From: Orbicella franksi
Taxonomy: Eukaryota
NCBI GenBank assembly: GCA_964199315.1
Contig: OZ116699.1
Location: 16,306,001-16,370,000, forward strand
Length of the DNA: 64,000 nucleotides
Direction of reading: 5' to 3'
Shown here in pieces: positions 1-41,395 of this stretch; position 1 is the first letter of the stretch; each line of letters starts with the position of its first letter. The position numbers and the translations under genes are program-made. The notes below the pieces were generated by a model. That model saw only the letters and a list, made by a program, of their open reading frames with translations. It was not told the origin of the DNA and ran no database searches.

Positions 1-520
1 CAGGCGTTCTTTTATTCTAATCTTCCGCTGCCGCAAAGAAAATTGAAACGGCTGAATGTAAGTGTTTTGCGTCGTTCTGTGATTGGCTCAAAAGCCTCGC
101 ATGACACTCTTTGTAGCCAATCATTGAGGGGAAGCATGCTGTTTGTTTTTTGTTTGTTTTGGTCAGGCTGTTGATTAGGAGAAAACCGACATCAATCCTG
201 ATTGAATGAGATACAGAGATCAGGTTTTAGTAATCAGTGGAATCGTGATGAAAGCGAGTTATATACTGACAATATTCCCAGATTTTCATTGTTTGTATTT
301 GCGATTCATCTGTAAAATGATTGTTGTATTGTAATCTTTAAATTTGTAAATAAGTAAGAATCTCCAAAACATTGTGTGACGTTTGCGTGACACGTGCGTG
401 ACCCAGCATCTTTAGACAGTGCTACAAGGTAGTTATCAATCAATGTACGTGAATGTCATTACAGTCAAAGTCTTTGGCGAAGACGCTATGCCTTTACACT
501 GGCTTTTTTTTCTCCTAAAG

Positions 521-784
521 AGAAAATCCACAGCGTTCCTCACATATTTATCATATGGGAACAGGAAGAACCTGTCTATGCTGGTAGCAACCTTGAACTG
601 CACTGTATTGTGCTCACAAAGGATCCCGATACTAGATATCGTTGGTATTACCGTGATTCTGACGTCCTGGATGACAAGAAGTTAGGCACTCTCATAAACC
701 AGAGGCTGTACGAACTAACCCCGTTTCAAAACGTCGACCCTTGCCCAAAATGGAAGCTAAACCTGAAGTTGAAAAACGTGTCTG
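521..784 (+). pseudogene. Truncated D3 exon copy (3' end and donor lost at a rearrangement junction)
   Basis: Matches 33036-33320, then jumps at 785-789 into linker-intron sequence (equivalent to 31026); read-through ends KNVSEKYLA* at 801. Confidence 0.85.
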
Positions 785-3700
785 AAAAATATCTCGCATA
801 AGGAAAATTGCTGTGACCAGAATTTTGGCGAGAGTCTTTGCATATTTACCTTCTTTCATTTCCCAGATTCTGGACTTTATCTATTGACCGGTTTTGATTT
901 TTATTTTGATCTACTTTGAATTACGTGACACTGAAAACCAGCAATTGTTCATTGCTTTACCCCCTTCCCGTTCCTTCCAACAACAACAACAACAACTTTT
1001 ATTATGACTAGCATATTTACAATTTTACAGAGCAAGTAAAAATTATCAATCTATCAGTTATCCAATCTATCATCCCACCCTGTAATTTTTTTCCTTTCCC
1101 AAGAAGTTTGAGAAAATAGTTTTTGCGTAAACTTACTCTCTGAACAGGACCGTAGCTACTAACAGGGGGGAACCGAGGCACTTGCTTGGGTAAAAAAAAA
1201 TATGTATGTGTTCTAGGTTACTTTATGAGGCTAATGACCAAATGATGAGAACTCTTCCACGATAGTATTTGATGATTAGTATATCTAACACGCTCATTTT
1301 GTTTATTTTCTCTTTATTTAGACCCAACAGTTTCACCTACAAACATTACAGGAGGTACAGCTTATTATGACATCCTCAGATTTAATTACAAATCTTTTAT
1401 TTTCCATCACAGTCCAGTTGTTCGGAAGCCGATTAGCGCTAACCCAGGGTGACATGTTTATCTGGGTTTCTTTTTCCTTTGTTCAAAAGCATTTTTTCCG
1501 ATCATCAAATTCAAGACAAAGAATAAACTGAATTTGCTATTTAGGTCCTGAAGAAACAAGACGAAGGACTTTCTGAAAGTCTATAACTAGTTGTACTTGA
1601 TTAAACAGAAGGAATTCTAATAATATCGCTTCTTTTTGGAATCTACATGTGGTGTTCTCAAAGAGTGGGAGAAATGCGTTATTCCCAAATGTGATTTAAG
1701 CATACATTTTGTTGCACATGTCCTGAATGTCCCGTATTACCAGCATCTGTGATGACTTTCAACATAAAATGAAAACCGCTCTAAGTAAGAAATCTACTCT
1801 GTTCTATGCTTCTGTGAAGTTACAAACGCTGTTTAATTGTCAACTTTACAGAAAAGCCACAATTCCTTTATCCAACGAAAATGGAGGCGATAAAATCGGC
1901 TTATAAGGAAGGCGACAAGTTTACACTGACGTGCGAAGCCAAAGGTGTCCCAGCTCCGGTGGTCACGTGGTACAAGGATGACAAGGTGTTTCAAGGAAGA
2001 CACAGAGCTGGCGAGTTTATAGCAACAGGGCAACACGACTACATTATTAACTTCTTTGGAGTGGATATCGCTGATGAGGGGAATTACACATGCATCGTAT
2101 CGAACATGTATGGCCGATTAACATATTCGTACAACTTTGACGTAATTGGTAAGTAGCACGGAACGTTGTTCTCTTTTCACTTTATAGAAGCGCAGTTTAA
2201 AAAATTCACTGTGTAGAAGAAATCATGTAACCTGCGACCAGGCGTTCTTTTATTCTAATCTTCCGCTGTCGCGAAGAAAATTGAAACGCCTTAACGTAAG
2301 TGTTTTGCGTCGTTCTGTGATTGGCTCAAAAGCCTCGCATGACACTCTTTGTAGCCAATCATTGAGGGGAAGCGTGCTGTTTGTTTTTTGTTTGTTTTGG
2401 TCAGGCTGTTGATTAGGAGAAAACCAACATCAATCCTGATTGAATGAGACGTTAGCACGTTTTTCCGCATTAGCCTTTGTTGCCCACTACAGAGATCAGG
2501 TTTTAGTAATAAGTGGAATCATGATGAAAGCGAGTTATATACTGACAATATTCCCAGATTTTCATTGTTTGTATTTGCGATTCATCTGTAAAATGATTGT
2601 TGTATTGTAATCTTTAAATTTGTAAATAAGTAAGAATCTCCAAAACATTGTGTGACGTATGCGTGACACGTGCGTGACCCAGCACCTTTAGACAGTGCTA
2701 CAAGGTAGTTATCAATCAATGTACGTGAATGTCATTACAGTCGAAGTCTTTGGCGAAGAAGCTATGCCTTTACACTGGCTTTTTTTTCTCCTAAAGAGAA
2801 AATCCGCAGCGTTCCTCACATATTTATCATATGGGAACAGGAAGGACCTGTCTATGCTGGTAGCAACCTTGAACTGCACTGTATTGTGCTCACAAAGGAT
2901 CCCGATACTAGATATCGTTGGTATTACCGTGATTCTGACGTCCTGGATGACAAGAAGTTAGGCACTCTCATAAACCAGAGGCTGTACGAACTAACGCAGT
3001 TTCAAATCGTCGACTCTTGGCCAAAATGGAAGCTAAAACTGAAGTTGAAAAACGTGTCTGCGGCTGATTCCGGACATTATGCATGTCAAGCTGAAAACGT
3101 TGTTGGTAATGATACACGGCTCACCTACCTTAATGTCACAATCAGACCCATTACCCCGTCAGCAACAGGTATGTAAAGGAAAGTGTTTGACTGACGAGAA
3201 TAAGCAATACTTTAGCCATACTGCTCTACCGTAAGACCTCCTCCACGCAGTCCAATAGAAATCAATGCCAGCGGCTAACCTGTGAAATGGCGGACAGGTT
3301 GAGATGAACCGACCACGAAAACGCTGGCCGATCTCAGTACTTCAATAACTCATTAAGCGTGCGCAATTTACAACATTCACCAAGAGATTTTCCAAACTGT
3401 TCAAATAGAATTCTTATTTGTTGAGTAAGGTCGGACTGAACTAAGAAATATTTGAGTCGATGACATTTCCCACCGACTTTGCAACCAAATATCCATCCAA
3501 CCAAATGTTTTTTCTTCTGGACTTAGCACTAAGTCAATAAGCTAGGGTTTAGGAAAACCCCTCCTTACGAGCACCTTAAGAAAGCTCAGTCGTTGACTTT
3601 ACGTAAGTATTCTTGCGGATAAAGGACTGAGCAACAGTTGCCAGGAGGGGGGCTGTAAAACCAGAAAGGGGGGCACACCAAGTAAACTCACACCCTAAGG

Positions 3701-6700
3701 GAAAGGGGAGTAACGGTTACATGTAAACGTCTCTTTGAAAAGCCGGGTGGTGGTATCTCATCTTCTTACGGGCAAGGTGACTTAAAGATTCGAATACCAC
3801 TTATGTCTGACTAACAATGATACTCATTTATTTCTTAAACTGTCTATAAAAGACAGGAATTTCACCGAGCTAAAATGCACTCCGGTTAGCCTAAACACCA
3901 CTTTGGTTAGCCTAACCAACACCACAGCTAGCCTATATGGCAACATTGTTTGCCGGAGAAGCGCTCTGGTTAGCCTCCAGTGGCTTTGAGTCAGCGTTAG
4001 CTAAAATTAGACCTTACTTGGGAATGGTTACTTATAGGTCTTTGATAGGGTTGCAGTTCCTGTATTTAGCTGCATGTTTAACTGAATGTATTTAGCGGCC
4101 AGTTTTTCATGACGTTTTTGTCGACTAGTTTCCTATACAATTTATTGAAGATTGTCAGAATTGCGATGATTAGGGACACGAGAGCAGTGTAAGGGGATCT
4201 GCAGGATTTAGCAGATTGAATGATGATCGATGCATTCATTGATTGATTGATTGATTTTGCTAACTGGCTGATGATTGGTTAATTGAATGATTGATGATTA
4301 ATTGATTGATTGATTGTGCACAAAATGCTGTTCCGAGAATTTTTGCTTTTTTAACATACCAAACCTACCAATACTCGAACGCACCCTTTAATCTACGATT
4401 ACTACTAGTTTACCGAAATATTCCGTTTGGATGAAATTTTCCCAAAATGTCACATGGCTACCAAAGGATGAAGAAACCCGTTCATCTATTAGTAAATGTC
4501 AATATCAGCTTCCATTTTTAAGAAAACGGCGTCATTTCTCTGCTGACAGTTCAATTTTGACCTGTTCTCAACTGTATTAGGTAACCCGGACAATCAATTG
4601 GTCTGTTTTGTACGTCTCGTATCAGACGAATAATGATATGTCTGTTTGATGCGTCATCCAGATACACTAAGTTGTTAAGTCGTCTGCCGTCGACTTGTTT
4701 TCAATATCATGTATAAAGTTAAAGTCTGTGTATAAGTCAAGTGGCTTATCAGGCCGGATCTTATCCCGGTTAATCCTGTAGCATGAAACGACTTGAAGTA
4801 TTTCTACTCCCCCCTGGATGAGATGTTAGTCTATCGCAGGGTTACCCCCAGCATTAAATTCGCCCGTACCCATTTATACACCAGGGTGGAGAGAGGCACT
4901 GTGAAAGTGAAGTGTCTTGCCCCATAACACAACACGATGTCCCCAGCCAGTATGACGTGTAGCAAGACTTATTTTAAATCTTCTTGCCTTGATTTCCAGT
5001 TCCTCCTCAAGTGAAAAATTCTTCTACTCCAAGGGTCGTCAAACCCGTTGGTGAAGAAGAAGTCAAACTGGTCTGTAACGTGAGAGATGCTCAGAACTAC
5101 ACGTGGTATAAAAACGGTAAAGCCATTCTTCAACCGTCCGGACGTTACACAGTAAGGAGTAACAGATTTCTACGAATAACCGACCGCGTTCAAAAATCCG
5201 ACAGTGGAGTGTTTGTTTGCGTGGCAGCAAACAGTTATGGAAGTGCAAACTGCACCATAAGATTGATAGTTGAAGGTATAACTTTTTTTTTATCTAAGTG
5301 GCCGCAAACTTATTTAATAAAGGTATTTATACCATGCCATAAAAAAATATAACCAATCAGAGTGCAGGAAAGCAGTTGTATACTCGACGGTATTGCGCCC
5401 AACCTTCCCATCGTGCGTCGCGCGTATATCGCATGTGTTGTGCTGGTCACTGTATTTTTCCATGGCATGGTAAACCGTATAAAACAGTTATGCAGTGATT
5501 TCTCGTGGCCCACCATGGAACATCCAACTTGTTCCCAATATTTTCTTGGTATACACACTCACTTAAAGGCTCGTGTGAGAAAATACAAGTGACCCATGGC
5601 ATATTTCATGCTATACTACTCAAAAGTGTTGCATAACTAGTATGAACTGGCGTTACATTGTTTCTATTTTTAAGCATACAAAGTCTCCATACAAATCTCT
5701 ATAAATTTGGGTAAAAAATTTCTCCGCATATCTCGCATAAGAAAAATTGCTGTGACCAGAATTTTGGCGAGAGTCTTTACATATTTACCTTCTTTCATTT
5801 CCCAGATTCTGGACTTTATCTATTGACCGGTTTTGATTTTTATTTTGATCTACTTTGAATTACGTGACACTGAAAACCAGCAATTGTTCATTGCTTTACC
5901 CCCCTCCCGTTCCTTCCAACAACAACAACAACAACTTTTATTATGACTAGCATATTTACAATTTTACAGAGCAAGTAAAAATTATCAATCTATCAGTTAT
6001 CCAATCTATCATTCCGCCCTGTAATTTTTTTCCTTTCCCAAGAAGTTTGAGAAAATAGTTTTTGCGTAAACTTACTCTCTGAACAGGACCGTAGTTACTA
6101 ACAGGGGGGAACCGAGGCACTTGCTTGGGTAAAGAAAAATATGTATGTGTTCTAGGTTTCTTTAGGAGGCTAATGACCAAATGACGAGAACTCTTCCACG
6201 ATAGTATTTGATGATTAGTATATCTAACACGCTCATTTTGTTTATTTTCTCTTTATTTAGACCCAACAGTTTCACCTACAAACATTACAGGAGGTACAGC
6301 TTATTATTACATCCTCAGATTTAATTACAAATCTTTTATTTTCCATCACAGTCCAGTTGTTCGGAAGCCGATTAGCGCTAACCCAGGGTAACATGTTTAT
6401 CCGGGTTTCTTTTTCCTTTGTTCAAAAGCATTTTCTCCGATCATCAAATTGAAGACAAAGAATAAACTGAATTTGCTATTTAGGTCATGAATAAACAAGA
6501 CGAAGGACTTTCCTAAAGTCTATAACTAGTTGTACTTGATTAAACAGAAGGAATTCTAATAATATCGCTTCTTTTTGGAATCTACATGTGGTGTTCTCAA
6601 AGAGTGGGAGAAATGCGTTATTCCCAAATGTGAGTTAAGCATACATTTTGTTGCACATGTCCTGAATGTCCCGTATTACCAGCATCTGTGATGACTTTCA

Positions 6701-9700
6701 ACATAAAATGAAAACCGCTCTAAGTAAGAAATCTACTCTGTTCTATGCTTCTGTGAAGTTACAAACGCTGTTTAATTGTCAACTTTACAGAAAAGCCACA
6801 ATTCCTCTATCCAACGAAAATGGAGGCGATAAAATCGGCTTATAAGAAAGGCGACAAGTTTACACTGACGTGCGAGGCCAAAGGTGTCCCAGCTCCGGTA
6901 GTCACGTGGTACAAGGATGACAAGGTGTTTCAAGGAAGACACAGAGCCGGCGAGCCTATAGCAACAGGGCAATACGACTACATTATTAACTTCTTTGGAG
7001 TGGATATCGCTGATGAGGGGAATTACACATGCATCGTATCGAACATGTATGGCCGATTAACATATTCGTACAACTTTGACGTAATTGGTAAGTAGCACGG
7101 AACGTTGTTCTCTTTTCACTTTATAGACGCGCAGTTTAAAAAATTCACTGTATAGAAGAAATCATGTAACCTGCGACCAGGCGTTCTTTTATTCTAATCT
7201 TCCGCTGCCGCGAAGAAAATTGAAACGCCTTAACGTAAGTGTTTTGCGTCGTTCTGTGATTGGCTCAAAAGCCTCGCATGACACTCTTTGTAGCCAATCA
7301 TTGAGGGAAGCATGCTGTTTGTTTTTTGTTTGTTTTGGTCAGGCTGTTGATTAGGAGAAAACCAACATCAATCCTGATTGAATGAGACGTTAGCACGTTT
7401 TTCCGCGTTAGCCTTTGTTGCCCACTACAGAGATCAGGTTTTAGTAATCAGTGGAATCGTGATGAAAGCGAGTTATATACTGACAATATTCCCAGATTTT
7501 CATTGTTTGTATTTGCGATTCATCTGTAAAATGATTGTTGTATTGTAATCTTTAAATTTGTAAATAAGTAAGAATCTCCAAAACATTGTGTGACGTTTGC
7601 GTGACACGTGCGTGACCCAGCATCTTTAGACAGTGCTACAAGGTAGTTATCAACCAATGTACGTGAATGTCATTACAGTCGAAGTCTTTGGCGAAGAAGC
7701 TATGCCTTTACACTGCCTTTTTTTTCTCCTAAAGAGAAAATCCACAGCATTCCTCACATATTTATCATATGGGAACAGGAAGAACCTGTCTATGCTGGTA
7801 GCAACCTTGAACTGCACTGTATTGTGCTCACAAAGGATCCCGATACTGGATATCGTTGGTATTACCGTGATTCTGACGTCCTGGATGACAAGAAGTTAGG
7901 CACTCTCATAAACCAGAGCCTGTACGAACTAACGGAGCTTCAAATCGTCGACCAAAATGGCCAAAATGGCCAACGTTGGCCAATATGGAAGCTAAAACTG
8001 AAGTTGAAAAACGTGTCTGCGGCTGATTCCGGATAGTATGCATGTCAAGCTGAAAACGTTGTTGGTAATGATACAGGGCTCGCCTACCTTAATGTCACAA
8101 TCAGACCCATTACCCCGTCAGCAACAGGTATGTGGAGTAAAGTGTTTGACTGACGAGAATAAGCAATACTTTAGCCATACTGCTCTACCGTAAGATTTCC
8201 TTGACGCAGTCCAATAGAAATCAATGCCAGCGGCTAACCTGTGAAATGCCGGACAGGTTGAGATGAGCCGGTCACGAAAACGCTGGCCGATCTCAGTACG
8301 TCAATAACTCATTAAGTGTGCGCAATTTACAACATTCACCAAGAGAGTTTCCAAACTGTTCAAATAGAATTCTTATTTGTTGAGTAAGGTCGGACTGAAC
8401 TAAGAAATATTTGAGTCGATGACATTTCCCACCGACTTTGCAACCAAATGTCCATCCAACCAAATGTTTTTTCTTCTGGACTTAGCACTAAGTCAATAAG
8501 CTAGGGTTTAGGAAAACCCCTCCTTACGAGCACCTTAAGAAAGCTCAGTCGTTGACTTTACGTAAGTATTCTTGCGGATAAAGGACTGTGCAACAATTAC
8601 CAGGAGGGGGGCTGTAAAACCAGAAAAGGGGGACACACCAAGTAAACTCATATCCTAAGGGAAACGGCAGGTTTCTTTCACAGGTCACAGGTCACAGGTC
8701 ACAGGTCACAGGTCACAGGTCACAATCAAAACACTCAGTAAATTTCGCAATGTAACAATTACTGAGATTCCCGAGAGGTTTATCGATGTTTGCATGCAAC
8801 AAACCCTAACTAATAATGTTTTACTCTATAATTTTAATGAAAAAATATCTAGGGGTGGTATATATACGAAATGGGTTGAAATATAGCTTTCAAACATATA
8901 GTGTTAATATATTTTATCGTAATAAGATAATTCATTATGATAGCAAATTGAACTGTTTTATTTCTATATATATATTTTTTTAAATCTATACAACGAGTAT
9001 GTACTAAACAGAAACAAGAGGGTCCCCTATACCTACTCTGAAAACAATTTCACGCATAAGTAATCGGCCTTTTCACGCATCGCAAAAAATTCGAAAGCAG
9101 CTTCACGTTAACAGAAAAAATCACTTTTCACGTAAAAAGGCTAAATCATGTGTTACATAAAAATACAAATTCTATCCACGTTTCGCAAAACATACAGAAT
9201 CCTCCATTTTGATGCATGGAAATGCCGTGTGCATGTGTGACACATCGTGACAGACTAGATTCTAGGTCCTCCTGGTACACTGTCGCTGTGGTTAGTTCTC
9301 AGTCGCGTGGAATGGACAGGTTTTACATCTAGTTTGGTGTAGTTTACGAGCTTTAATGACGCTAAAATCTCCAAAAAAAGTGAACAATTATTCCCGCAAA
9401 AGTCGTTGGTTCACAAATCACGCGTAAGTAGATGCATAATTCACGGATCAGTGTAAGCGTCTTTCGTTTTCATATTATATTGAAAGGCTAAAAACAATTT
9501 ATGTTTTCAACAGTTATAAGTCTTAGCTTTCTTTGGATCAATTTTTTTTTTTTAATTTCAGTGCTACAAATGATTTCCCCTACGCGCTTTTTTTTTCAAG
9601 AAAGAGCTCTTATAGTTGCACTTGGGACGCACTTGTATGCATCTGTTTTATGATGTTTTTTTGTTGTTGTTGTTGTTTTCATTAAAATTATAAAGTAAAA

Positions 9701-12700
9701 CATTTTTAGTTAGGGTTTGTTGCATGGAAACATCGATAAACCTCTCGGGAATCTCAGTAATTGTTACATCGCGAAATCTACTCAGTGTTTTGATTGTGAC
9801 CTGTGACCTGTGACCTGTGACCTGTGACCTGTGACCTGTAAAAGAAACCTGCCATAAGGGAAAGGGGAGTAACGGTTACATGTAAACGTCTCTTTGAAAA
9901 GCAGGGTGGTGGTATCTCATTTTCTTATGGGCAAGGTGACTTAAAGATTCGAATACCACTTATGTCTGATTAACAGTGATACTCATTTATTTCTTGAACT
10001 TAGACCTTACTTGGGAATGGTTACTTGTAGGTCTTTGATAGGGTTACAGTTCCTGTATTTAGCTGCATGTTTAACTGAATGTATTTAGCAGCCAGTTTTT
10101 CATGACGTTTTTGTTGACTAGTTTCCTATACAATTTATTGAAGATTGTCAGAATTGCGATGATTAGGGACGCGAGAGCAGTGTAAGGGGATCTGCAGGAT
10201 TTAGCAGATTGATTGATGATCGATCCATTGATTGATTGATTGATTGATTTTGCTAACTGGCTGATGATTGGTTAATTGAATGATTGATGACTAATTGATT
10301 GATTGATTAGACTGACTAATGATTGATTGATTGTTTTGAATGACCTATTGCACAAATATGGGTTATTGGTTATTGACCAGGGGCGGGGCAGAAGACTCCT
10401 GAAATTTGCGTATCTGGATCATCCACCAAAAAGTGACGTCACATCCGGTTTAAACTGCGCCACGCAGCTCGTTTCACAAAGCAAAAAAATGGCGTTTCGA
10501 TTGGGGAAGTTTTTCCTCTATTTGCAAACCATCAGGTTCGTGTCCTTTCATACTGAGGATAGAAAGATGTTGTAGGCACATTTCTTTGACTTTTTAAGCA
10601 GAACTTTCGGCAAAAGAAAACAGTTTAGTATTGTTTTGAAGGAAAATAACGGAGAGCCTTCTGTCATCGAATGGCAGATTTTACACATTTGCAAAACTGG
10701 GGTTGTTCCGACTTTTGGTTCTTATTGTTCGTGACTCGGTGATAACACTAAGTGCAATGGCCTATAATGTTAACAACAACCTGGATGAAGCATTGCTGGC
10801 CATAGTTTGCACTGTGTACCATGGGAACATGTTTAACAGAAGCCGGTTTTTTCTAAAAGTGAACACAGTTGAAGCTCTGTATCCACGTGCGTGTGGTGGA
10901 AAATCGTCTACTCAAGGTTAGTATCCTATTTCCGTATCTCTTGCTGAATACTTTTTTCTCTGTAAGAAATAATCTATGTTGAGAGCTAGAGTTCATTGTA
11001 AATGCATACTTTGGGGATTACAGATTTCCCCGAAAAGATCAGCAAAGGGATGAAGCAGTCCAGATGAGTAGAACTTTCCTTCAGTCATCCAGTGGTTAAT
11101 TGTACATTCCTCTGTATTATCTCAACTGCAATGTCGGCCTGGGGATCAACTTCTTTGGGCAGTTCAAAAAGGGGGGGGGGGGGGGTTGGCCTGTTTAGGG
11201 TTAGCTCCCAATGGTATGGTATATCCTTACCTCTTAACTTAACCCCCACTTTTGACAGGTACCCACTTCTACTGTGACCCGGAGCAGGGGGGTTAAGATT
11301 ACTCCCTTTTATGCACTATATAGGTATGTGTGGCCCCAAAGGGTAGGGTTTTTCAGCCATTTTGGTCATAAATAGGGTATCGATTTTGGCCACTTTGGTC
11401 TTAAATAGGGTATGGGTTTTGTACTCTACTGTAGTCTTGAATTGGGTAATGTTGTTTAGAAGAAACTACTTTTTCATCATTATTGATAAGACCATAAACA
11501 AAAGGGCTTCAAAACTTATGTTTAGGGCAACTGTGTCAGTGGCAATGGTTGTAAATAGGTTGTCAAATTTTTGGTCTGGGCATAAATAGGATACAGAAAA
11601 TCTCAGATTTTGGTGATCAATAGAGTAAGGGTTTTGGGGTTTTTTTCTGGGAGTACCCCCTCCTCCCGGGTACTGTAAAGTGGTTCATAATTAAATGCTG
11701 GATAGAATTCAGATTTTATCTTGTAATTAGCTTGAACCTCTAAATTATTATCTATTATTATATGGCTTTGGCTTGTGGCCGATATAATGCGCGCTCTGAT
11801 TGGCTAGGAGCGAGATCTGAGCGGTCATTATGCAGCCGTAATGCCCACGGGCCGATTACGGATTATGCAAATTAGGAAGAGCCCAGTTCTGAAAATTCAA
11901 GCGCATTGAAGTGATGAAAGCCGATTAAAATCAGTACAAGAATGTCAGTAGCTAAAGGTTTAGAGATATTTCTTTAATAAAATTTATAGAGATGACTTAC
12001 CAGTCAGTAACCTTGGCAGGCACCAGTGAAAAACAATCAAAGTTTGCCTAGTCTTAAGTAAAGCTAAAATTGCTAAGTAAAAAACACGATCGGCAGATCT
12101 GCCATGCATCCTGAGCAGAACACCACAAAGAAACTTATAAGGTATCATCTTAGTCACAGCAATTACCGAAGTATTGAACTCCGTCAAAGTTCTCATCAAA
12201 TAGATTCCCTCGCTTTGACACAAGCAAGTGTAAATCAGCTTCCAGGATCATCAGATGTAAACAATCAGGCAGTTTCTGTCGGTAGCAGTGTTTCTGATAA
12301 CTGCAGACATTCACAAGGCTTGAAATGTTCATCCATAAATCCCAGAATCAAGAAGGCGAGGATATGTTGTCGAAAGCGAATGCAAAGATCGAGTTAAGCT
12401 TATTTTGAGCAGTGCATTCTGAAGCATTAGTATTTTCTTTCACCGAAAGACGGTTGGTTTGGACAATTTTGAAGCACTTGCTGTCTTTTCTATATGCGTT
12501 GACGTTTCACCCCAAAAGTCGGAAAAACTCCCCCATCAACTTGTGGTACCACAATACTAAAATACGTTTTTGAGGTTGTGACAGTGACTTTTCCGTAAAG
12601 AAATGAGTGTTTTTAATGGAATACGTAATACAGTGGTGAAGTTCACTGACTGTGTAGGTTTGCCCTAGGTTTGAGACGATGAATGAATCGGTAAACGCGC

Positions 12701-25053: not shown

Positions 25054-25141
25054 ATGGCCTTAGCTTTCTTTGGTCGTGATGGTATATTCAGCGTTTTCAT
25101 TCTTCTCGGAATTGTTGGAATTTCAGCTCAACAATCTGGAG
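25054..25141 (+). CDS. FGFR: FGFR exon: signal peptide ([29 protein letters not shown])
   Basis: Strong-context ATG (aaaATGg) and a hydrophobic core. The phase-1 donor GGAG|GTAGGT matches the phase-1 D1 exon. Linkage to 30298 is inferred. Confidence 0.75.
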
Positions 25142-31100: not shown

Positions 31101-34100
31101 CAGATTCTGGACTTTATCTATTGACCGGTTTTGATTTTTATTTTGATCTACTTTGAATTACGTGACACTGAAAACCAGCAATTGTTCATTGCTTTACCCC
31201 CCTCCCGTTCCTTCCAACAGCAACAACAACAACAACTTTTATTATGACTAGCATATTTACAATTTTGCAGAGCAAGTAAAAATTATCAATCTATCAGTTA
31301 TCCAATCTATCATCCCGCCCTGTAATTTTTTTCCTTTCCCAAGAAGTTTGAGAAAATAGTTTTTGCGTAAACTTACTCTCTGAACAGGACCGTAGCTGCT
31401 AACAGGGGGGAACCGAGGCACTTGCTTGGGTAAAGAAAAACATGTATGTGTTCTAGGTTTCTTTATGAGGCTAATGACCAAATGACGAGAACTCTTCCGC
31501 GATAGTATTTGATGATTAGTATATCTAACACGCTCATTTTGTTGATTTTCTCTTTATTTAGACCCAACAGTTTCACCTACGAACATTACAGGAGGTACAG
31601 CTTATTATTACATCCTCAGATTTAATTACAAATCTTTTATTTTCCATCACGGTCCAGTTGTTCGGAAGCCGATTAGCGCTAACCCAGGGTGACATGTTTA
31701 TCCGGGTTTCTTTTTCCTTTGTTCAAAAGCATTTTCTCCGATCATCAAATTCAAGACAAAGAATAAACTGAATTTGCTATTTAGGTCATGAATAAACAAG
31801 ACGAAGGACTTTCTGAAAGTCTATAACTAGTTGTACTTGATTAAAGAGAAGGAATTCTAATAATATCGCTTCTTTTTGGAATCTACATGTGGTGTTCTGA
31901 AAGAGTGGGAGAAATGCGTTATTCCCAAATGTGATTTAAGCATACATTTTGTTGCACATGTCCTGAATGTCCCGTATTACCAGCATCTGTGATGACTTTC
32001 AACATAAAATGAAAACCGCTCTAAATAAGAAATCTACTCTGTTCTATGCTTCTGTGAAGTTAAAAACGCTGTTTACTTGTCAACTTTACAGAAAAGCCAC
32101 AATTCCTTTATCCAACGAAAATGGAGGCGATAAAATCGGCTTATAAGGAAGGCGACAAGTTTACACTGACGTGCGAGGCCAAAGGTGTCCCAGCTCCGGT
32201 AGTCACGTGGTACAAGGATGACAAGGTGTTTCAAGGAAGACACAGAGCCGGCGAGTTTATAGCAACAAAGCAATACGACTACGTTATTAACTTCTTTGGA
32301 GTGGATATCGCTGATGAGGGGAATTACACATGCATCGTATCGAACATGTATGGCCGATTAACATATTCGTACAACTTTGACGTAATTGGTAAGTAGCACG
32401 GAACGTTGTTCTCTTTTCACTTTATAGAAGCGCAGTTTAAAAAATTCACTGTATAGAAGAAATCATGTAACCTGCGACCAGGCGTTCTTTTATTCTAATC
32501 TTCCGCTGCCGCGAAGAAAATTGAAACGCCTGAAGGTAAGTGTTTTGCGTCGTTCTGTGATTGGCTCAAAAGCCTCGCATGACACTCTTTGTAGCCAATC
32601 ATTGAGGGGAAGCATGCTGTTTGTTTTTTGTTTGTTTTGGTCAGGCTGTTGATTAGGAGAAAACCAACATCAATCCTGATTGAATGAGACGTTAGCACGT
32701 TTTTCCGCGTTAGCCTTTGTTGCCCACTACAGAGATCAGGTTTTAGTAATCAGTAGAATCGTGATGAAAGCGAGTTATATACTGACAATATTCCCAGATT
32801 TTCATTGTTTGTATTTGCGATTCATCTGTAAAATGATTGTTGTATTGTAATCTTTAAATTTGTAAATAAGTAAGAATCTCCAAAACATTGTGTGACGTTT
32901 GCGTGACACGTGCGTGACCCAGCACCTTTAGACAGTGCTACAAGGTAGTTATCAATCAATGTACGTGAATGTCATTACAGTCGAAGTCTTTGGCGAAGAA
33001 GCTATGCCTTTACACTGCCTTTTTTTCTCCTAAAGAGAAAATCCGCAGCGTTCCTCACATATTTATCATATGGGAACAGGAAGAACCTGTCTATGCTGGT
33101 AGCAACCTTGAACTGCACTGTATTGTACTCACAAAGGATCCCGATACTAGATATCGTTGGTATTACCGTGATTCTGACGTCCCGGATGACAAGAAGTTAG
33201 GCACTCTCATAAACCAGAGCCTGTACGAACTAACGCAGCGTCAAAACGGCGACCAAAATGGCCAAAATGGCCAACGTTGGCCAAAATGGGAGCTAAAACT
33301 GAAGTTGAAAAACGTGTCTGCGGCTGATTCCGGACAGTATGCATGTCAAGCTGAAAACGTTGTTGGTAATGATACACGGTTCACCCACCTCAATGTCACA
33401 ATCAGACCCATTACCCCGTCAGCAACAGGTATGTAAAGGAAAGTGTTTGACCGACGAGAATAAGCAATACTTTAGCCATAGTGCTCTACCGTAAGATCTC
33501 CTCGACGCAGTCCAATAGAAATCAATGCCAGCGGCTAACCTGTGAAATGCCGGACAGGTTGAGATGAGCCGGTCATGAAAACGCTGGCCGATCTCAGTAC
33601 GTCAATAACTCATTAAGCGTGCGCAATTTACAACATTCACCAAGAGATTTTTTAAACTGTTCAAATAGAATTCTTATTTGTTGACTAAGGTCGGACTAAA
33701 CTAAGAAATATTTGAGTCGATGACATTTCCCACCGACTTTGCAACCAAATGTCCATCCAACCAAATGTTTTTCTTCTGGACTTAGTACTAAGTCAATAAG
33801 CTAGGGTTTAGGAAAACCCCGCCTTACGAGCAGCTTAAGAAAGCTCAGTCGTTGACTTAACGTAAGTATTCTTGCGGATAAAGGACTGTGCAACAATTAC
33901 CAGGAGGGGGGCTGTAAAACCAGAAAGGGGGGGCGCACACCAAGTAAACTCATACCCTAAAGGAAAGGGGAGTAACGGTTACATGTAAACGTCTCTTTGA
34001 AAAGTAGGGTGGTGGTATCTCATTTTCTTATGGGCAAGATGACTTAAAGATTCGAATACCACTTATGTCTGACTAACAATGATACTCATTTATTTCTTGA

Positions 34101-34499
34101 ACTGTCTATAAAAGACAGGAATTGCACCGAGCTAAAATGCACTCCGGTTAGCCTAAACACCACTTTGGTTAGCCTAACCAACACCGCAGGTAGCCTATAT
34201 GGCAACATTGTTTGCCGGAGAAGCGCTCTGGTTAGCCTCCAGTGGTTTTGAGTCAGCGTTAGCTAAAATTAGAGCTTACTTGGGAATGGTTACTTGTAGG
34301 TCTTTGATAGGGTTGCAGTTCCCGTATTTAGCTGCATGTTTAACTGAATGTATTTAGCGGCCAGTTTTTCGTGACGTTTTTGTTGACTAGTTTCCTATAC
34401 AATTTATATATTGAAGATTGTCAGAATTGCGATGATTAGGGACGCGAGAGCAGTGTAAGGGAATCTGCAGGATTTAGCAGATTGATTGATGATCGATCC

Positions 34500-34542
<43 letters not shown>

Positions 34543-37500
34543 TGGCTAACTGGCTGATGATTGGTTAATTGAATGATTGATGATTAATTGATTGATTGAT
34601 TAGACTGACTAATGATTGATTGATTGTTTTGAATGACCTATGACTGATTGAATGACTGACCGACCGACCGACCGACCGACCGACCGATCGATCGACCGAT
34701 CGATCGATCCATTTATTAATTCGCAGTTTTGAATAGATAAAGTGTCTGTCTCTATTTAACAAGTTTGTTTTCATATTTTTCTCAGGTGCGCCAGTGATCA
34801 CCACTCTGGTAGATACGCGTACCCCTGCCTCAAAACATGCGCAGTCAGATCCACCTTTATTAACACCGCTGGAGATCGGCCTGTTTGTCGCGGGCGCCGT
34901 CATCATGATAGTGTTGATCGTCGCTGTCCTTTGCGTCTGTATACACATGAAGAAACGTAGGAAGAGTATGAAGCTACCGGACGCTAAATACGACGTTGCT
35001 AGGGAAAGTGTTGTCATTGAACCACAAAGTTTCTCCCGAAGGACGGCATCTATGTCCTCGACTGGATCAGCGGCAGCTTTGTTCATGCGACAGAGGAGTA
35101 TTCGTGGTCGCCTGGAGTCGAGGCTAACACAGGTAAGGACTGGTGATGAACAATTTAAATAGCTCATAGGTAACGCTGTGGTGTTTTGGGTTAAAGGATG
35201 AGTTAAAGGACGAGTTTGGAATGGGTGTTTAAATTAGAATAATTCCATTGAATGGTGTAAAATTAGAACTTGAATGTTAATCATGTGACGGACCGTAGAA
35301 AATGCTGCAAGTGCACGTGAAAGAAGGAACCGATCAGATATTTAAGCAAACACCAACAAGTCAAACATGTTTATGATTGTTATCTTGCCTGTCTCACACT
35401 CATGTGACTCTCTTTAGGTGTCGGAAATCGAGGTGCCGTATGACGAGGCTTGGGAGCTGGATAGAAGCCAGTTGGTTTTCTCTGAGATACTGGGCGAGGG
35501 AGCGTTTGGCCGAGTTCTTAAAGCAGAAGCTCTTGGTCTGGGTTTCACGGTAGCTGTCAAGATGCTAAAAGGTGAATAAAGTGACCAGTAGACCTGGTAA
35601 TCTGGCATTCCCTTCCGCTAATTCTCAACCGACTAACTGAGGGACTAACTCTTTCCCGGGATCTTACTCAGAATAAGCGCTCGCCGAGGAGAGAACCATC
35701 TTAGTTTCCAAGACTACACGTGGTTTCAAAACAGATCCATTTTAGTTTTGTTACATGGTTGCTTATCGTCGTCATATCTTTAGTTTCTGAGTTTACGCTC
35801 ATTTCCCTTCTTTCCTTTTTCCTCTACATGTATGCATTTTCCTTTCAACATGGTACGACCACTTAGCTAAGAGTAACTTGTTGTATTTAAAGGCATTAAT
35901 TACAGTAACGGAATTTCCGCGTTATACAGGTCTGGATTTAGTTCTTATCAAAGACTGGGTGAGAGCACGATCCGGCAAGGCTTTGAAACACGACCGAAGA
36001 AATACCATACCCCTCGTTACTTTAAGAGTCTTGTTCAATTCAAAGATTCCTTTTTAAACTTCATCAGTGTTACCCGTAGAATGTAAAGGTGCCTTCACGT
36101 TCGTGATTCACAAAGATGGCCTTCGCCACTATTTCCTTCTGAAGCAAGGTAATTTCAAGTAATAGGGCTTCTTCGAGATCCAAATCCAAGATGGCGGTTA
36201 CTTCGCTAGTTAGTGTTACTGTCTTGAAATGAAAGTACTCATTTGAGGTTAAGCACACGATCATGCTATCAATTTCATTGTAACTTATCGTTGCAATTTG
36301 CAGAGGATGCAACAGATCAAGAATTAATGGATTTGGTGTCAGAGATGAAGGTGATGAAAACAATAGGAAAACACAAGAACATCATTAATTTATTGGGAGT
36401 CTGCACTCAGGAAGGTAATGTTCCTCCATCTCTTGCGATACAAGGTTCCTTTGCACCATTTACGGGGTATATAGATTTCTTTGGTTGTCTTTTATTCGTT
36501 AATTAAGCCCGCACCATTTTGAATGTCTGGAACCGAAACACCTTTGGAAAATGGACAGGTACATGTGACTGGAAGTTCTGAACATTGCTCAGTCCCAGAC
36601 CTTGCATTACAGACTCCGAATGAAACAAGATAGATGCGGCTTGGCAAACAAAAACAAACAAAATACATAGCACAAAATACACGATACAAAACAGTACCGA
36701 CTTTACCTTAAAAAGAAGCAGCGTGGAGGGGTTAGGAATTGTAGTTCTAAGCAGGTTTCCGTAGGCAATAGACAAGTTTGACTTGTCGGAATAGGAGGTA
36801 CTGATGAAAGCTAGTGTTGGTGGGCGAATTATGTTATAGTTTTCACCTCACGTTAGCTATGGCTGGGGCGGATCTAGGGGGGGGGGTGGGTTCGGGGGAT
36901 TCGGTCGAACCCGGTCGAACCCCCTTACTTAAAAAAGAAAATTGAGACGTTATAACTAGCTGACTTGGCCTCAAAATGCCGGAAATCCCTTTTATCCGAG
37001 GACATCAATTTTAATAATTTTCTGCGTGAGGATGCTCCAAGAGCCCCAACAGAGGACCTCCTTCGGCAGTCCGTACCTCGAACCCTCTTCTCTAAAATCC
37101 TCTATCCGCCTCAGTTAGGTATTTAGTAAAACTTTGAAACCTGCACTTCAGTAATAATGATAATTGCGAAAATTATCACTCTCGGGCATACAGCTTTTCA
37201 TTTTAGTTTTCTCTTGCTGGTGAATTTGGAAAGGAAAACCTGCCCTTTTTTCCAGGCTTTGTGTCATTCTTGCCTCTTGTTTTCAGGCCCCTTGTTTGTT
37301 GTGGTAGAATACGCGGCCCTTGGCAACCTGCGTCAGTTCCTACAAGAAAGAAGACCTGGGTTAGAATATCATGATGATGTTGATGCCCAGTCTCCGAAGC
37401 AACTCACTGTTCAAGATCTGCTATCTTTCTGTTATCAAGTAGCAAAGGGAATGGAATTCCTCTCATCAAGGAAGGTAAATACTTCACTTATTCAACACTG

Positions 37501-40500
37501 TGCAAATCCTTTCAATGTATATGCGAGTTACAGTGTCTCTCTTATTTATACTCCCCTGCCTGCACTCGGTAACAAGAGCCGTCTCTGGCAAACCTTCGTT
37601 GAAGCACTAGTAAATTTCCGATTTTTATCGCCCAGTCTAACGGTAGCAAAAGTGTTCAAAGCTACTTTGCAAATTGTCACGTGTGCGAACGAAGACGTAT
37701 TTCCGGCTACAAGCGCCAACCGGAAATACGTCTGTGTTCACAGGCTACGTCATCATGGACTGATCAGTAGCTTAGCTGCGTCGGAGAAGAAGCTGTGAGC
37801 TCGATCCGGTTGAGAAGACCGCAATTTGTCAAGTTTATAACAGCAAAAATAGAGTTGGAAAGAGGAGGAAAAAAAAGGCAGATAGCTGGGAACCCTATGA
37901 AGAAACCAGCCGGTTTATGGTTTCTTTTGATTACATAGATTGATTTAACCTTGAATTTAATACGTTAGACCTTTGTGTAAAATCTTGATCGATCGCATTG
38001 GTAAATAAGGTCCGTTTATTATTAGGTAATTTAATATAGGAAGTAATTGTACTTTTATAACTTCACAAAAAAGAAGAAGTGAAGGAGACTTTATACATAC
38101 TCTACCAGACCAAATCCCTGAGAAATGACTGTTTCTGCTAGTTCTTAACTTGGAACTTCTGGGAGAATGTGGGAAGAGTTATGAGAGTATACTTTGCAGA
38201 ATTATTAGCTAGAGAAATGATGTCTATTATATCTGTTATTCGACAGTGCATTCATCGAGATCTGGCAGCTCGAAATATTCTGGTGGCTAAAGATAGGGTC
38301 ATGAAGATTGCTGATTTCGGTCTTGCAAGGAACGTGCATGAAGACGATTATTACAGAAAAACAACAGACGTAAGTAAAATAACACATTTATTAATCAGAA
38401 TAATGTGAAAATAATTCCCCCGTCGCAGCCAAGTGATCTGAGGTGAAAATAGACGAACTTTCCTTTTGAGGATAGGATGCTAGTCTATTACCGTTAAACC
38501 CACCCCCCACCCCCACCGTTTTATTTATACACCCAAGTGGAGAGGTCAAGGGGCTCTGTGAGAGCAGAGTGTCTTGCGCAAGAACATAACAAAATAACCC
38601 TGACTAGGATGGGATTCAGTCCTCTGGATTTGGTGTTAAACCATGACCGGAAAGCAGCTCCTGGTTTTGAGATTTCATGTTTCATAGCTCTCTTGTTTTT
38701 CCTCTCTCCTTTGCTCAGGGAAGACTTCCAGTGAAGTGGATGGCGCTTGAGGCATTGATTGACAGAGTCTACACCACCCAAAGTGACGTGTGAGTGTAGG
38801 GTGCCGTGTTGTATGATTCCCTCTATATCTCCCGTTGTGTTGTCCAATCAAACTGTTTTATATGCATTTCTGATGCACATCAGGAGCAGTTCAGTGCTTG
38901 ATGTAATATATCAAACACGAGAGACTGTGTTTTATTGGGATATCCAAGCACCGAGAAGAGAGTTGAAAATACGACGCGTAGCGCAGAGTATTTTTGACGA
39001 AATTCGAGGTGTTTGGATAGCCGATGAAACACTGTCTCGAGTGTTTGATATGTCTTCTCAATCGAAACAGAATAAACTCGTCAAAATTTATGCTAATTAC
39101 GACCGGGTATCCAAACCTCCTTCACGGTTGTGATTTTCTTTGGTTTACCTTGATGAATTATTAATGAGTTTGAGACATATTAATCCCGAGCCTTAGGTTT
39201 TTGGAAATGTTCATTATGATAAGTGAAGAACCCTTATACGAGATGGTTTTACTGAGAGATTGTCTCTCCCAATTAACGCTCTTGAATCCGCCCTGTATCT
39301 TGAACACACTTCCTTCTTTCTTTGGATATTTTTAACTTTGCTATTTCCTTTTGTTTATTTAGGTGGTCGTTTGGAGTGTTGACGTGGGAAATTGTAACAT
39401 TTGGTGAGTGACCAGTATATTTATTTTTATGGTTAAAAAGGTCATGCAACATGTTCTACCAATATTGCCATTGTGCTGGTGTCAGTTTAAACGTCAATAC
39501 GTTTCGTGGAGTGATCTTTCATTACCCTCTTTTATGATTTTAAGGTGGCTCTCCATATCCCGGCATACCAGTGGAAAATCTCTATGGGCTGCTCAAGTCC
39601 GGTTATAGGATGAAACGACCAATCAATTGCGACAGAGAATTGTAAGTTACATTACTATCCCCCAGTGGCTGGTTAAACTTTCTTTGAAAACAACTTACAA
39701 AATGATAGGCTGGATATGACAGTGAACGTGTTGGCGAAATGTACTGATGATGTGGAGTGAAGTTGCTTTCTGCAGGAGTGATTCGAGAGCAGGGTCGGCA
39801 TCGCGACCTCTCGCCTCATTGTGTTACAGTGCGTATGGAAGTTTGCTTTTTTCAAACAATTGATTTCTCATTTTGTTGCAATTTGATTACCGTAGGTATC
39901 AGCTCATGCTAAACTGCTGGAGTGAGTTTGCCGACAAAAGACCAACTTTTCCGGATCTTGTGGGAGAATTCGATCGTATGATAACGATGCTTTCAGACAA
40001 GGTAAACGTTATTGTTAGAAGAAGAATGATTAGGGACTTTTTTTAAGCCTGAAGCTTTCGAGGAATTTTAGCTCGAGTTGTCAAGCTGTCACACTTCTTC
40101 GACTTCTGCATAGGCAGCATTTATACGTCTTACCTACACTAGTTACTCTAAATCTCAAAATACGTTCAGTGTTCTGTGACATTTTATAAAGGTCAGTACA
40201 CATCAGGAGACATATTGCGGGGACATGTTGCAGTGGACGTTTTCTTCGTGTAACATGCCCGATTTTTCAAGAAGCGTTCTCGTCCCCGCAACCTGTTGCA
40301 TGCAACTCAGCTGGGTTGAATTTCTTGCGTCCTGAAGCAGGGACAATGTCAATGTGGCATACTGTACACTGTAGACTGCTCTTCAGTACAAACTGTCGCT
40401 GCTACAACATAGAAATGAACCAATATCCGCTTTGTGTGCACCTGCTCGCGTACTGACTGCACAGTCCCTACAACATGCTTCCTATGCGTACACTCGAAGG

Positions 40501-41395
40501 GGCTTGTCTCCGCTTCACATCACCGAAAGATGTCCGTAGTGTGTGCCGACCTCGAAGCGGTGATAAAACTCTTCTCGCTACATACAGAGGCAGACTGGAC
40601 GAAAATTGTCTAACCCGCAATCAATTCCTCCCACCTGCTATAACAAGAAATTTATGTTTCTACAAGGCACTACGGCTAATTTATAAAAAAGTATAAAAAC
40701 TATTGCCCCAAAATTGTGTGGCTTTAAAAATACTCTTTTCCCTTGCGTAGGAATATCTTGACCTTCAGCCACCACTTGTGAGTCCACTGTCGGCAAGAAC
40801 ACCTTCATCTTCCGAAGAAGACAACGTCTTCGGAAGTTCGGAAAACGTGTGTGATTTGTCGAAAAGTAGCAACAGTTTGAATTTTCACGACGGGGAAATC
40901 TCTGAAGATGGCGCGCATGATGTGGGACACGGTGAAGATGGTGATGGCTACGCTGACATTCGCCGCCAGCCCGTCAATGAGCCACTTCTTGATTCCTGTG
41001 GAAGCAAAACGTCGTTAGCTTCTAAATCTTCACTTTTCGCCAAACGAAAACTCGACCAACTCAACGGGAGCATCGTCTCGCTTTCCTCGCAACTAAGTAA
41101 ACAATTTCGTGGGCTAGAAGACAACGAAGAGCACAATAAAGAAGAAAATGTCGGTCTTTTAGATGAGGAAGTCGATCAAGGAAGCGACGATGCTTTTGAA
41201 ACTGGTGACATCAGAAATTCGAAAAGTTTACCGGAGCCATCACAAGGTGGTCGCGCCTCAGGAAGACCACAAGACAGCGGTGCCATGGAAACAAGTCTGG
41301 ATTCCGGAGAAATTGATCCTGCTGTATTGATCGAGTACGCACGCCCAGGAAAGACAAATCCCACAAGAAGACCCTCCAAACAGAGCGATGTCTAA
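25054..41395 (+). CDS. FGFR: Fibroblast growth factor receptor (3 Ig + TM + split tyrosine kinase), 15 coding exons, 989 aa
   Basis: join(25054..25141,30298..30573,31562..31594,32092..32388,33036..33428,34786..35132,35418..35571,36304..36414,37287..37474,38247..38369,38719..38789,39363..39403,39545..39641,39896..40001,40751..41395) = 2970 nt. All introns are GT-AG with consistent phases and there are no internal stops. Motifs: [24 protein letters not shown], activation-loop [21 protein letters not shown], post-kinase EYLDL. Confidence 0.92.
27716..28604. mobile_element. TIR element with repeated CATGTAAAATGCGACGTTTAAA motifs
   Basis: The motif occurs in both orientations at 27718-27900 and 28500-28604. 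Confidence 0.5.
29255..29485. mobile_element. MITE with internal 7-bp (GCGGACT-like) tandem array
   Basis: TIRs CCGGTCAGTATAAAACATGGACTG / CAGTCCGTGTATTATACTGACCGG. Confidence 0.7.
30013..30248 (-). mobile_element. SINE fragment in FGFR intron 1
   Basis: Near-identical to 4717..4950. Confidence 0.55.
30298..30573 (+). CDS. FGFR: FGFR exon: Ig domain D1
   Basis: ttccag| acceptor, GAAG|GTATAA donor, phase 1-1; VKLVC...WYKNG...[12 protein letters not shown]-set Ig motif. Confidence 0.9.
31562..31594 (+). CDS. FGFR: FGFR 33-nt D1-D2 linker micro-exon ([11 protein letters not shown]; no acid box)
   Basis: Polypyrimidine tract + ttag| acceptor, GGAG|GTACAG donor, phase 1-1; conserved in all three copies in the window. 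Confidence 0.75.
32092..32388 (+). CDS. FGFR: FGFR exon: Ig domain D2
   Basis: tacag| acceptor, ATTG|GTAAGT donor; [18 protein letters not shown]...[19 protein letters not shown]2-like. Confidence 0.92.
33036..33428 (+). CDS. FGFR: FGFR exon: Ig domain D3 (with QNG repeat insertion)
   Basis: ctaaag| acceptor, ACAG|GTATGT donor; LELHCIV...RWYY...[18 protein letters not shown]. Confidence 0.92.
34495..34710. repeat. (ATTG)n / (GACC)n microsatellite at the right edge of the duplicated cassette (copies at 4235-4316 and 10210-10335)
   Basis: Direct inspection. Confidence 0.9.
34786..35132 (+). CDS. FGFR: FGFR exon: stalk, transmembrane helix, juxtamembrane
   Basis: ctcag| acceptor, CAG|GTAAGG donor; [25 protein letters not shown] followed by KKRRK stop-transfer. 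Confidence 0.92.
35418..35571 (+). CDS. FGFR: FGFR kinase exon (Gly-rich loop, VAVK); not in ORF track
   Basis: [51 protein letters not shown]; tttag| and G|GTGAAT. Confidence 0.93.
36304..36414 (+). CDS. FGFR: FGFR kinase exon (alphaC)
   Basis: [37 protein letters not shown]. Confidence 0.93.
36863..37114. mobile_element. Decayed MITE with GGGGCGGATCTAG-type ends (hAT-like) in an FGFR intron
   Basis: CTGGGGCGGATCTAGG ... CCTCTATCCGCCTCAG; no clear TSD. Confidence 0.4.
37287..37474 (+). CDS. FGFR: FGFR kinase exon (hinge, kinase insert)
   Basis: [24 protein letters not shown]...[15 protein letters not shown]. Confidence 0.93.
38247..38369 (+). CDS. FGFR: FGFR kinase exon (catalytic and activation loops)
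   Basis: [41 protein letters not shown]. Confidence 0.95.
38719..38789 (+). CDS. FGFR: FGFR kinase exon (P+1 loop)
   Basis: [23 protein letters not shown]; ctcag| and GT|GTGAGT. Confidence 0.92.
39363..39403 (+). CDS. FGFR: FGFR kinase micro-exon (alphaF)
   Basis: [13 protein letters not shown]; tttag| and G|GTGAGT. Confidence 0.9.
39545..39641 (+). CDS. FGFR: FGFR kinase exon
   Basis: [32 protein letters not shown]. Confidence 0.92.
39896..40001 (+). CDS. FGFR: FGFR kinase exon (C-lobe end)
   Basis: [35 protein letters not shown]. Confidence 0.92.
40751..41395 (+). CDS. FGFR: FGFR terminal exon: 214-aa acidic Ser-rich C-terminal tail
   Basis: gcgtag| acceptor, begins EYLDL (FGFR PLC-gamma docking motif), open to TAA at 41393-41395. 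Confidence 0.88.
   Translation, partial: EYLDLQPPLVSPLSARTPSSSEEDNVFGSSENVCDLSKSSNSLNFHDGEISEDGAHDVGHGEDGDGYADIRRQPVNEPLLDSCGSKTSLASKSSLFAKRKLDQLNGSIVSLSSQLSKQFRGLEDNEEHNKEENVGLLDEEVDQGSDDAFETGDIRNSKSLPEPSQGGRASGRPQDSGAMETSLDSGEIDPAVLIEYARPGKTNPTRRPSKQSDV

Follow-up and report, generated by a model that had tools for sequence, protein, structure and literature searches.

An FGFR and its kinase-less neighbour in the coral Orbicella franksi: probable recent copying of the receptor's immunoglobulin exons upstream of an old terminal exon

Introduction

To which gene do exons for the ligand-binding half of an FGFR belong when they stand upstream of the receptor's own signal-peptide exon? The question is raised by a 64,000-nucleotide stretch of the Orbicella franksi genome (assembly GCA_964199315.1, contig OZ116699.1, positions 16,306,001 to 16,370,000 of the forward strand), called the window below. 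It contains an FGFR gene at 25054–41395, an array of copies of the FGFR immunoglobulin (Ig) exons (D1, D2, and D3) at 1–10348, and between them, from 19642, an exon encoding a transmembrane (TM) segment with a short tail (the tail exon); these exons all lie on the forward strand. An earlier note on this DNA had proposed a kinase-active FGFR paired with an old kinase-less paralogue of near-identical ectodomain, whose ligand-binding half had been recently overwritten or was kept in step by gene conversion, and had suggested, among other checks, a cDNA joining an upstream D3 or D2 exon to 19642, and separate trees for ectodomain and tail. By comparison of the window with three other coral assemblies (S1, S2, and S3), we arrive at the reading, to which we give a probability of roughly 0.7, that the locus is a tandem pair composed of an FGFR and an old kinase-less neighbour, the tail exon of which received recent copies of the FGFR Ig cassette.

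Three partial copies of the FGFR Ig cassette

In a self-blastn comparison, positions 1–10348, exons and introns alike, matched the Ig region of FGFR at 29616–34641 with ~96–98% identity, and exon mapping placed all of these Ig exons before the FGFR signal-peptide exon (25054–25141, phase 1 donor), which lies downstream of every copy; on both points the earlier note was right. The upstream block consists of three partial head-to-tail copies rather than a single cassette (designated c0, c1, and c2, with F for the FGFR's own copy), as seen from the alignments of 1–784 with 32479–33254 (97–98%), 789–4315 with 31026–34601 (95.8%), 4318–8664 with 29616–33966 (97.7%), and 9997–10348 with 34266–34641 (91.5%). 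The copies are joined at two different junctions: J1 (784|789) fuses c0 in the middle of D3 to a point within the D1–D2 intron, and J2 (4316|4317), leading from c1 to c2, is a classical tandem junction. Copy c0 (1–784) is partial, the window starting inside it, and its D3 exon (521–784) ends in mid-exon at J1 with its 3′ half and donor lost. Copy c1 (789–4315, corresponding to FGFR 31026–34601) is devoid of D1 and has open D2 (1852–2148) and D3 (2797–3168) exons bounded by AG/GT. Copy c2 (4318–10348, corresponding to FGFR 29616–34641) has open D1 (5000–5275) and D2 (6791–7087) exons and a D3 exon (7735–8127) in which CAG is changed to TAG at 8034–8036, giving an in-frame stop directly before the Y-x-C motif; it also carries a private insertion of 1.19 kb (8666–9853) flanked by 178-nt inverted repeats (96% identical). 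All Ig exons are of phase 1-1 with canonical AG/GT sites, with the exceptions of the truncated D3 of c0 and the TAG-bearing D3 of c2. Although the copies are 96–98% identical to the FGFR cassette, the window does not show the near-identical ectodomain of the earlier note in complete form: every copy is partial, the order is disturbed, one D3 is truncated, and another is nonsense. Two of the cassette breakpoints (34601 and 34641) fall in (GATT)n/(GACC)n microsatellites at ~34590–34700, directly upstream of the FGFR TM exon.

A 9-bp unit (CCAAAATGG) is expanded inside the D3 exons of the FGFR (33230–33300) and c2 (7930–8000), adding seven residues at the most variable part of D3, and the expansion is missing from c0, c1, and S1–S3.

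The interval between the copies and the tail exon is mostly occupied by an 8.5-kb block (10376–18902), edged by inverted repeats of 80–90 nt that share a perfect core of 33 nt (at 10416 and at 18819). The block contains no Ig exons and has no counterpart in the loci of the other corals; it is probably a transposon-like insertion in an intron. Among the open reading frames (ORFs) of 10349–19600 (those on the minus strand and the long ones on the plus strand), nothing was recognisable by eye, and no Pfam scan was made of them. Directly past the right breakpoint of c2, the segment 10349–10362 (TGCACAAATATGGG) is similar to 4317–4330 (TGCACAAAATGCTG), where the cassette unit begins at J2, a likeness that may be due to chance or mark the remnant of a further degenerate unit.

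A conserved terminal exon of the kinase-less neighbour

The coding part of the tail exon (19642–19931) specifies a linker followed by a TM segment of 22 aa and a tail of 47 aa that carries the motif SLRAKYEVQNEYVVVPDYN, closed by a stop codon at 19929–19931; it is contained in an ORF of 19638–19928 with the acceptor AG at 19640–19641 in phase 1. Its 3′ untranslated region (UTR; 19932–21775) was traced to the limit of a spliced contig, L003, described below. With a single TM segment, a short tail devoid of any kinase Pfam match, and a UTR reaching to at least 21775, the exon has the make-up of an FGFRL1-type terminal exon. The earlier note had likewise described a kinase-less exon ending soon after the TM segment, with 48 aa given for the tail that measures 47 aa here.

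As the earlier note had also stated, the tail exon resembles the FGFR TM exon at the protein level only. The likeness is weak but collinear, with a Smith–Waterman score of 57 against a shuffle mean of 25 (z = 7; none of 2000 shuffles reached 57) and, for the comparison of the two family profiles, an hhalign E-value of 1.6e-4 at 50% probability. The two exons are equal in intron phase and both start with G-x-P. A common origin of the two is, on these alignments, probable, not proven.

A search by phmmer and word index yielded 31 homologous tail-exon ORFs in coral contigs (E ≤ 1e-3; 58–99% identity). In distant homologues, the C-terminal half of an Ig domain is followed by the TM segment and tail in a single ORF; one of these, P0003, is on a 1.27-kb contig from a public sequencing run. 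The tail sequence I(D/E)SLRAKYEVQNEYVVVPD(Y/F)N is near-invariant in 38 sequences, with eight invariant columns, and the linker is variable; the ratio of nonsynonymous to synonymous differences (pN/pS) in the family is 0.4–0.8. The exon at 19642–19931 is thus truly the last exon of a kinase-less, FGFR-like coral gene, and a conserved one.

At the end of the tail exon (19908–19931), the conserved …PDYNR(S/N/D)V* has become …PDYNRGNEEVNT* in the window via changes at the old stop, by which RSV* is shifted to RGNEEVNT*. A public variant 99% identical to the tail exon of the window, P0010, reads through the new stop too, and the contigs with this variant are genomic and unspliced, their identities to the window being 98.8% and 96.2%. 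The ancestral RSV* form is present in one RNA contig.

The same locus in other corals

In S1 (contigs L002/L010), a distance of 5.4 kb separates the tail exon from the FGFR signal exon downstream of it, an arrangement shared with the window, and upstream of the tail exon the gene has its own three Ig exons (pD1–pD3), which are only 26–36% identical to the FGFR Ig exons; the full-domain PDB matches of pD2 are D2 of FGFR1–4. From these exons and the tail exon, the neighbour is recognised as an old three-Ig, kinase-less, FGFR-like gene, in accordance with the old paralogue of the earlier note, here represented by a conserved tail family and a pure form directly upstream of FGFR in S1. An ESM-Atlas feature search gave FGFRL1 clusters at ranks 2–3 (scores, 0.89–0.90), which serve as a lead only, and the search with pD3 gave generic Ig clusters only. 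S1 has no chimera at the position of that in the window.

Homology of the window to S1 upstream of the tail exon begins just 730 bp before 19642, and the segment 18913–19641 corresponds to the S1 intron between the paralogue's own D3 and its tail exon. When the S1 exons were used as tblastn queries, pD1–pD3 were undetected in the window even at E = 10. Within the window, the FGFR-cassette copies stand where the paralogue's own Ig exons would be, and the suggested recent replacement of the ligand-binding half is supported within this scope. No signal exon for the upstream gene occurs within the window, which starts inside c0.

Related architectures were found in the two other assemblies. In S2 (L007, L009/L006, and L008), the order is pure paralogue, chimeric gene, and FGFR; the chimeric gene comprises a copy of FGFR intron 1, FGFR-type D1, D2, and D3 exons (all open, with canonical sites), and a second tail exon. 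In S3 (L013), the gene adjoining FGFR has its own pD1, followed by FGFR-type D2–D3 and then the tail exon. The tail exons are 77–87% identical across species and only weakly similar to FGFR TM exons. In the S2 pure paralogue (L007 1269–6743), the own pD2–pD3 pair is tandemly duplicated with a 4.33-kb period, and retrotransposon ORFs (RVT_1) follow immediately after its tail exon; the tendency of the locus to rearrange is not confined to the coral of the window.

Splicing of FGFR-type exons onto the tail exon

Metagenome contigs of the Joint Genome Institute (JGI) were scanned for the last 13 nt of D3 joined to the first 16 nt of the tail exon. The exact predicted D3–19642 junction was present in one contig, L003 (Ga0099808_1110053; 2258 nt), in which nt 1–122 represent the 3′-terminal part of an FGFR-type D3 exon (identity in a 127-nt blastn alignment: 96.9% with c1, 96.1% with the FGFR copy, and 95.3% with c2) and nt 123 onward match window 19642–21775 at 99.4% (blastn, nt 118–2258 to 19637–21775, with a 5-nt overlap at the junction), the intron being excised exactly at GT...AG. 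The cDNA join proposed as a check in the earlier note thus exists, at the exact splice sites. The D3 part of L003 has an in-frame TAA of its own (…YACQA*NVVG…), 75 nt before the last junction. In a single-cell RNA-seq contig, the match to the window starts at 19637 with 133 further nt upstream, and the five extra matching bases, AACAG, are those at the end of the FGFR-type D3 exon. Contig L005 is an unspliced copy, and a protein search with the c1 D3 ORF gave only genomic exon ORFs of other species and no spliced product. Because all the Ig exons and the tail exon are in phase 1, the reading frame is kept when FGFR-type exons are spliced to the tail exon; an isoform skipping the damaged exons would also remain in frame, and c1 D2–D3 is intact.

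The FGFR gene

The signal, three Ig, and TM exons of the downstream gene (25054–41395) form one open frame that is followed by a full kinase. The Ig exons occupy 30298–33428 (D1, 30298–30573; D2, 32092–32388; D3, 33036–33428), the TM and juxtamembrane exon 34786–35132, and the kinase and C-terminal exons 35418–41395, with all the catalytic motifs present, DVWSFG among them. Pfam gave Ig matches on D1–D3 and PF07714 on all five kinase-region ORFs tested. The gene accordingly has a signal-like N-terminus, three I-set Ig domains, a single TM segment, and a tyrosine kinase with catalytic motifs, and its kinase exons are 94–100% identical between the window and S1; from its sequence, it is apparently a canonical, kinase-competent FGFR.

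Between species, the D2/D3 exons of FGFR show pN close to pS (0.13 versus 0.13–0.17; window compared with L010 and L008), and D1 and the kinase exons are far more conserved than D2/D3. Judged by these substitutions, the ligand-binding half of FGFR appears unusually fast-evolving.

Origin and state of the chimera

Taking these findings together, we infer the following order of events. The upstream gene would be a coral member of the old kinase-less FGFR-like (FGFRL1-like) family, with its last exon beginning at 19642. In the lineage of the window, the FGFR cassette (29616–34641) may have been recently copied upstream of the tail exon, and the copied cassette may then have been rearranged by more tandem duplication and deletion, with breakpoints in intronic microsatellites. 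The product assembled from the intact exons would be membrane-anchored, with the ligand-binding domains of FGFR and the non-kinase tail of the neighbour, and might serve as a ligand trap or a dominant-negative partner.

The window copies differ from one another by ~2.7% in pairwise comparison, about one-fifth of the divergence from the nearest coral compared (the split of the window from S1). Private differences number 50 in c1, 39 in c2, and 47 in F, and are evenly interleaved, which fits a near-simultaneous burst of duplication without detectable conversion since. In a maximum-likelihood tree of the D2 and D3 exons, the three window copies form one clade, and the S2 chimera and S2 FGFR another, with 100% support. 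In the tail-exon region, 66 informative sites join the window with the pure paralogue of S1, against 5 and 3 for the alternatives, and the two tail exons of S2 are each other's closest relatives. Ig exons therefore cluster by species, and tail exons do not cluster by chimera type; the separate trees called for in the earlier note gave this same division. According to the blastn coordinates, the window appears to keep more sequence than the S2 chimera on both sides of the FGFR/paralogue join. The tail grouping and the non-matching extents of the junctions favour separate, lineage-specific captures over one ancient chimera. An old paralogue that was recently re-headed is thus supported, and the pattern extends to a recurrent one in corals.

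Among the window copies, exon divergence is not below intron divergence, and the differences in D3 are mostly non-synonymous. Two of the three complete upstream D3 copies, with that of L003 counted, carry stop codons, which are different ones; neutral drift would give a stop in 20–35% of such copies. These signs, together with the shifted stop of the tail exon, point to weak or no constraint, and the chimera of the window is, most likely, of recent origin and unstable structure, with decay under way in at least part of it.

It is possible, although we consider it unlikely, that the chimera is instead a working matched decoy, of which at least one isoform (e.g., c1 D2–D3 with the damaged exons skipped) is translated and the ligand-binding exons are renewed by selection. 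The in-frame splice of D3 to the tail exon, the open reading frames and intact splice sites of c1 D2, c1 D3, c2 D1, and c2 D2, and the invariant tail motif are all consistent with such a role. The same architecture is intact in S2, where the chimera and FGFR differ by 6–7% in the D2/D3 exons and by 11–12% in the flanking introns, suggesting constraint; the capture in S3 of D2–D3 only is of exactly the ligand-binding half; and the fast evolution of the FGFR ectodomain would make re-matching useful. However, the only spliced transcript seen bears its stop 75 nt before the last junction, D3 of c2 is nonsense and that of c0 truncated, and no signal exon or full ORF of the upstream gene is known. 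The exons of the window copies are no less divergent than their introns, and the conserved stop of the tail has been shifted in the window.

A lower probability still is given to ongoing concerted evolution, in which one ancient chimera shared among the corals would have had its Ig exons matched to FGFR by conversion within each species. The species-wise clustering of the Ig exons in the window and S2 is compatible with it, as is a gradient in S2, where the substitution divergence between the chimera and FGFR rises from 3.5–5% in intron 1 and D1 to 14–16% near the junction, the duplicated tail exons being 16.7% diverged. With the lower divergence of exons than of introns, this pattern would fit an old duplication, later homogenisation of the 5′ part, and constraint on both genes. 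A D3 variant among the JGI sequences, P0071, is moreover a mosaic of F-like and copy-like states. On the other hand, the tail region of the window goes with the pure paralogue of S1 and not with the S2 chimera (66 versus 3 sites), the window retains more sequence than S2 on both sides of the junction, and S1 is without a chimera at the corresponding position. Among c1, c2, and F, no conversion tracts were found, the 136 variable sites being unclustered (permutation p = 0.25–0.94), so that, within the window, the part of the earlier proposal in which the copies are kept in step by conversion is not supported. On the basis of the tail-region tree and the non-matching junction extents, we rejected, as the main reading, one ancient chimera common to the window and S2.

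Several observations weigh against our preferred reading, that is, recent copying of the cassette upstream of the neighbour's tail exon. A deletion at the S2 junction or a conversion of the tail exons could rescue the ancient-chimera history. With pN close to pS in FGFR D2/D3 itself, the lack of constraint on the copies is weak evidence of decay. The D3 of L003 has no match of allelic level among the window copies, with 4–6 mismatches per 127-nt alignment (for c1, 4 mismatches; P = 0.003–0.05 over the 122 exon nt), and therefore derives from a further copy or from the array of a different colony; the expressed D3 copy is different from the assembled ones. The exact array has little independent support: four sampled words spanning J2 occurred in a single DNA run but were missing from all 14 runs (X1–X14; DNA or unclassified) that contain the tail exon. 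Contigs from RNA runs cover 14.5–20.5 kb patchily and consist mostly of repeats and unspliced or genomic material, so that depth is no proof of exon-specific expression. Finally, no full-length transcript of the upstream gene is visible, and its own Ig exons could still be situated beyond the left edge of the window; the FGFR-type exons would then have been added to them and would not have replaced them.

That the copies in the first 10 kb arose in assembly, as mis-joined haplotypes or a collapsed or expanded repeat, is very improbable: the restriction of the J2 words to a single DNA run, the start of the window inside a copy, and a divergence of 2–3%, which may be within the range expected of coral heterozygosity, would allow it, but there are no N runs in the window, the three copies differ in their boundaries, their pattern of 21-bp indels, the private 1.2-kb insertion, and their private stop codons, analogous architectures exist in two other assemblies (S2 and S3), and L003, from an independent sample, joins an FGFR-type D3 to the tail exon, a splice that requires an FGFR-type D3 upstream of 19642, as the FGFR's own D3 is downstream of it.

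Relation to known systems

The systems most like this pair are FGFRL1 and the paired receptors of the SIGLEC5/SIGLEC14 type. Paired receptors of this type are adjacent genes with near-identical extracellular exons and unrelated signalling ends. The coral pair is like them in that ectodomain sequences cluster by species, the ligand-binding exons grouping by species and the signalling ends by gene. It differs from them in that the similarity in the window looks like a recent burst of duplication without detectable conversion tracts, the short-tail partner is partly broken in the window, the copying always runs from FGFR to the neighbour, and the copied extent varies by species (D1–D3, D2–D3, or multiple partial copies).

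A kinase-less FGFR ectodomain on a membrane anchor is a classical dominant-negative design, and symmetric phase-1 Ig exons permit in-frame shuffling. The vertebrate FGFRL1 tail is histidine-rich, unlike the coral tail, the motif of which (SLRAKYEVQNEYVVVPD) resembles the juxtamembrane part of the coral FGFR itself. A further difference from FGFRL1 is that the Ig exons in the window are recent copies from the neighbouring FGFR and not a separately evolved ectodomain. From truncated FGFR isoforms, the coral gene is distinguished by a truncation that stems from the terminal exon of a separate gene via genomic duplication and not from alternative splicing or polyadenylation. With regard to likeness, FGFRL1 (FGFR5) combines three Ig domains of FGFR type with one TM segment and a short tail devoid of a kinase, to which the pure form of S1 corresponds, as it does to the linkage of FGFRL1 with FGFR and FGF genes (PMC2754479). 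From Nematostella to human, FGFRL1 has one Ig domain per exon, phase 1 introns, and a last exon containing the TM segment, tail, and 3′ UTR (PMC2754479). In the literature on FGFRL1 or kinase-less FGFR in corals, nothing relevant was found beyond that paper.

As a tentative extension, for which the odds are rather against than in favour, corals may repeatedly re-head an ancient kinase-less FGFR-like gene, in at least three independent lineages, by a birth-and-death of matched decoys that selection, and not conversion alone, would drive. The FGFR ectodomain would evolve at a near-neutral rate, such that an antagonist would have to be re-matched, with captured extents of D1–D3, D2–D3, or multiple partial copies.

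The coral loci would provide a natural and datable set of stages in the assembly of a signalling antagonist from its own receptor: the anchor and tail come from a tandem neighbour, in-frame capture is made possible by symmetric phase-1 exons, and the ligand-binding half arrives by segmental duplication. This series runs from the pure form (S1) through open chimeras (D1–D3 in S2 and D2–D3 only in S3) to the young, decaying form of the window, allows a test of whether selection acts on such decoys or whether they simply arise from the instability of the locus, and bears on the origin of FGFRL1-type genes. Annotation of coral genomes is likely to model such loci wrongly, as a single long FGFR with many Ig domains.

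Other features of the window

Directly after the FGFR stop, an 83-nt inverted repeat (41810–41892 and 42780–42862; 96% identical) surrounds ~890 bp and has the look of a miniature inverted-repeat transposable element. Farther downstream, 54238–55787 and 55795–57340 form a direct tandem duplication of 1.55 kb (96% identical) with an ORF of 80–84 aa in each copy. The following region, 57878–61900, is composed of two related blocks (72–80% identical) that are rich in short tandem repeats, with a very strong GC skew (0.24–0.36) and ORFs of SVSQ-type low complexity.

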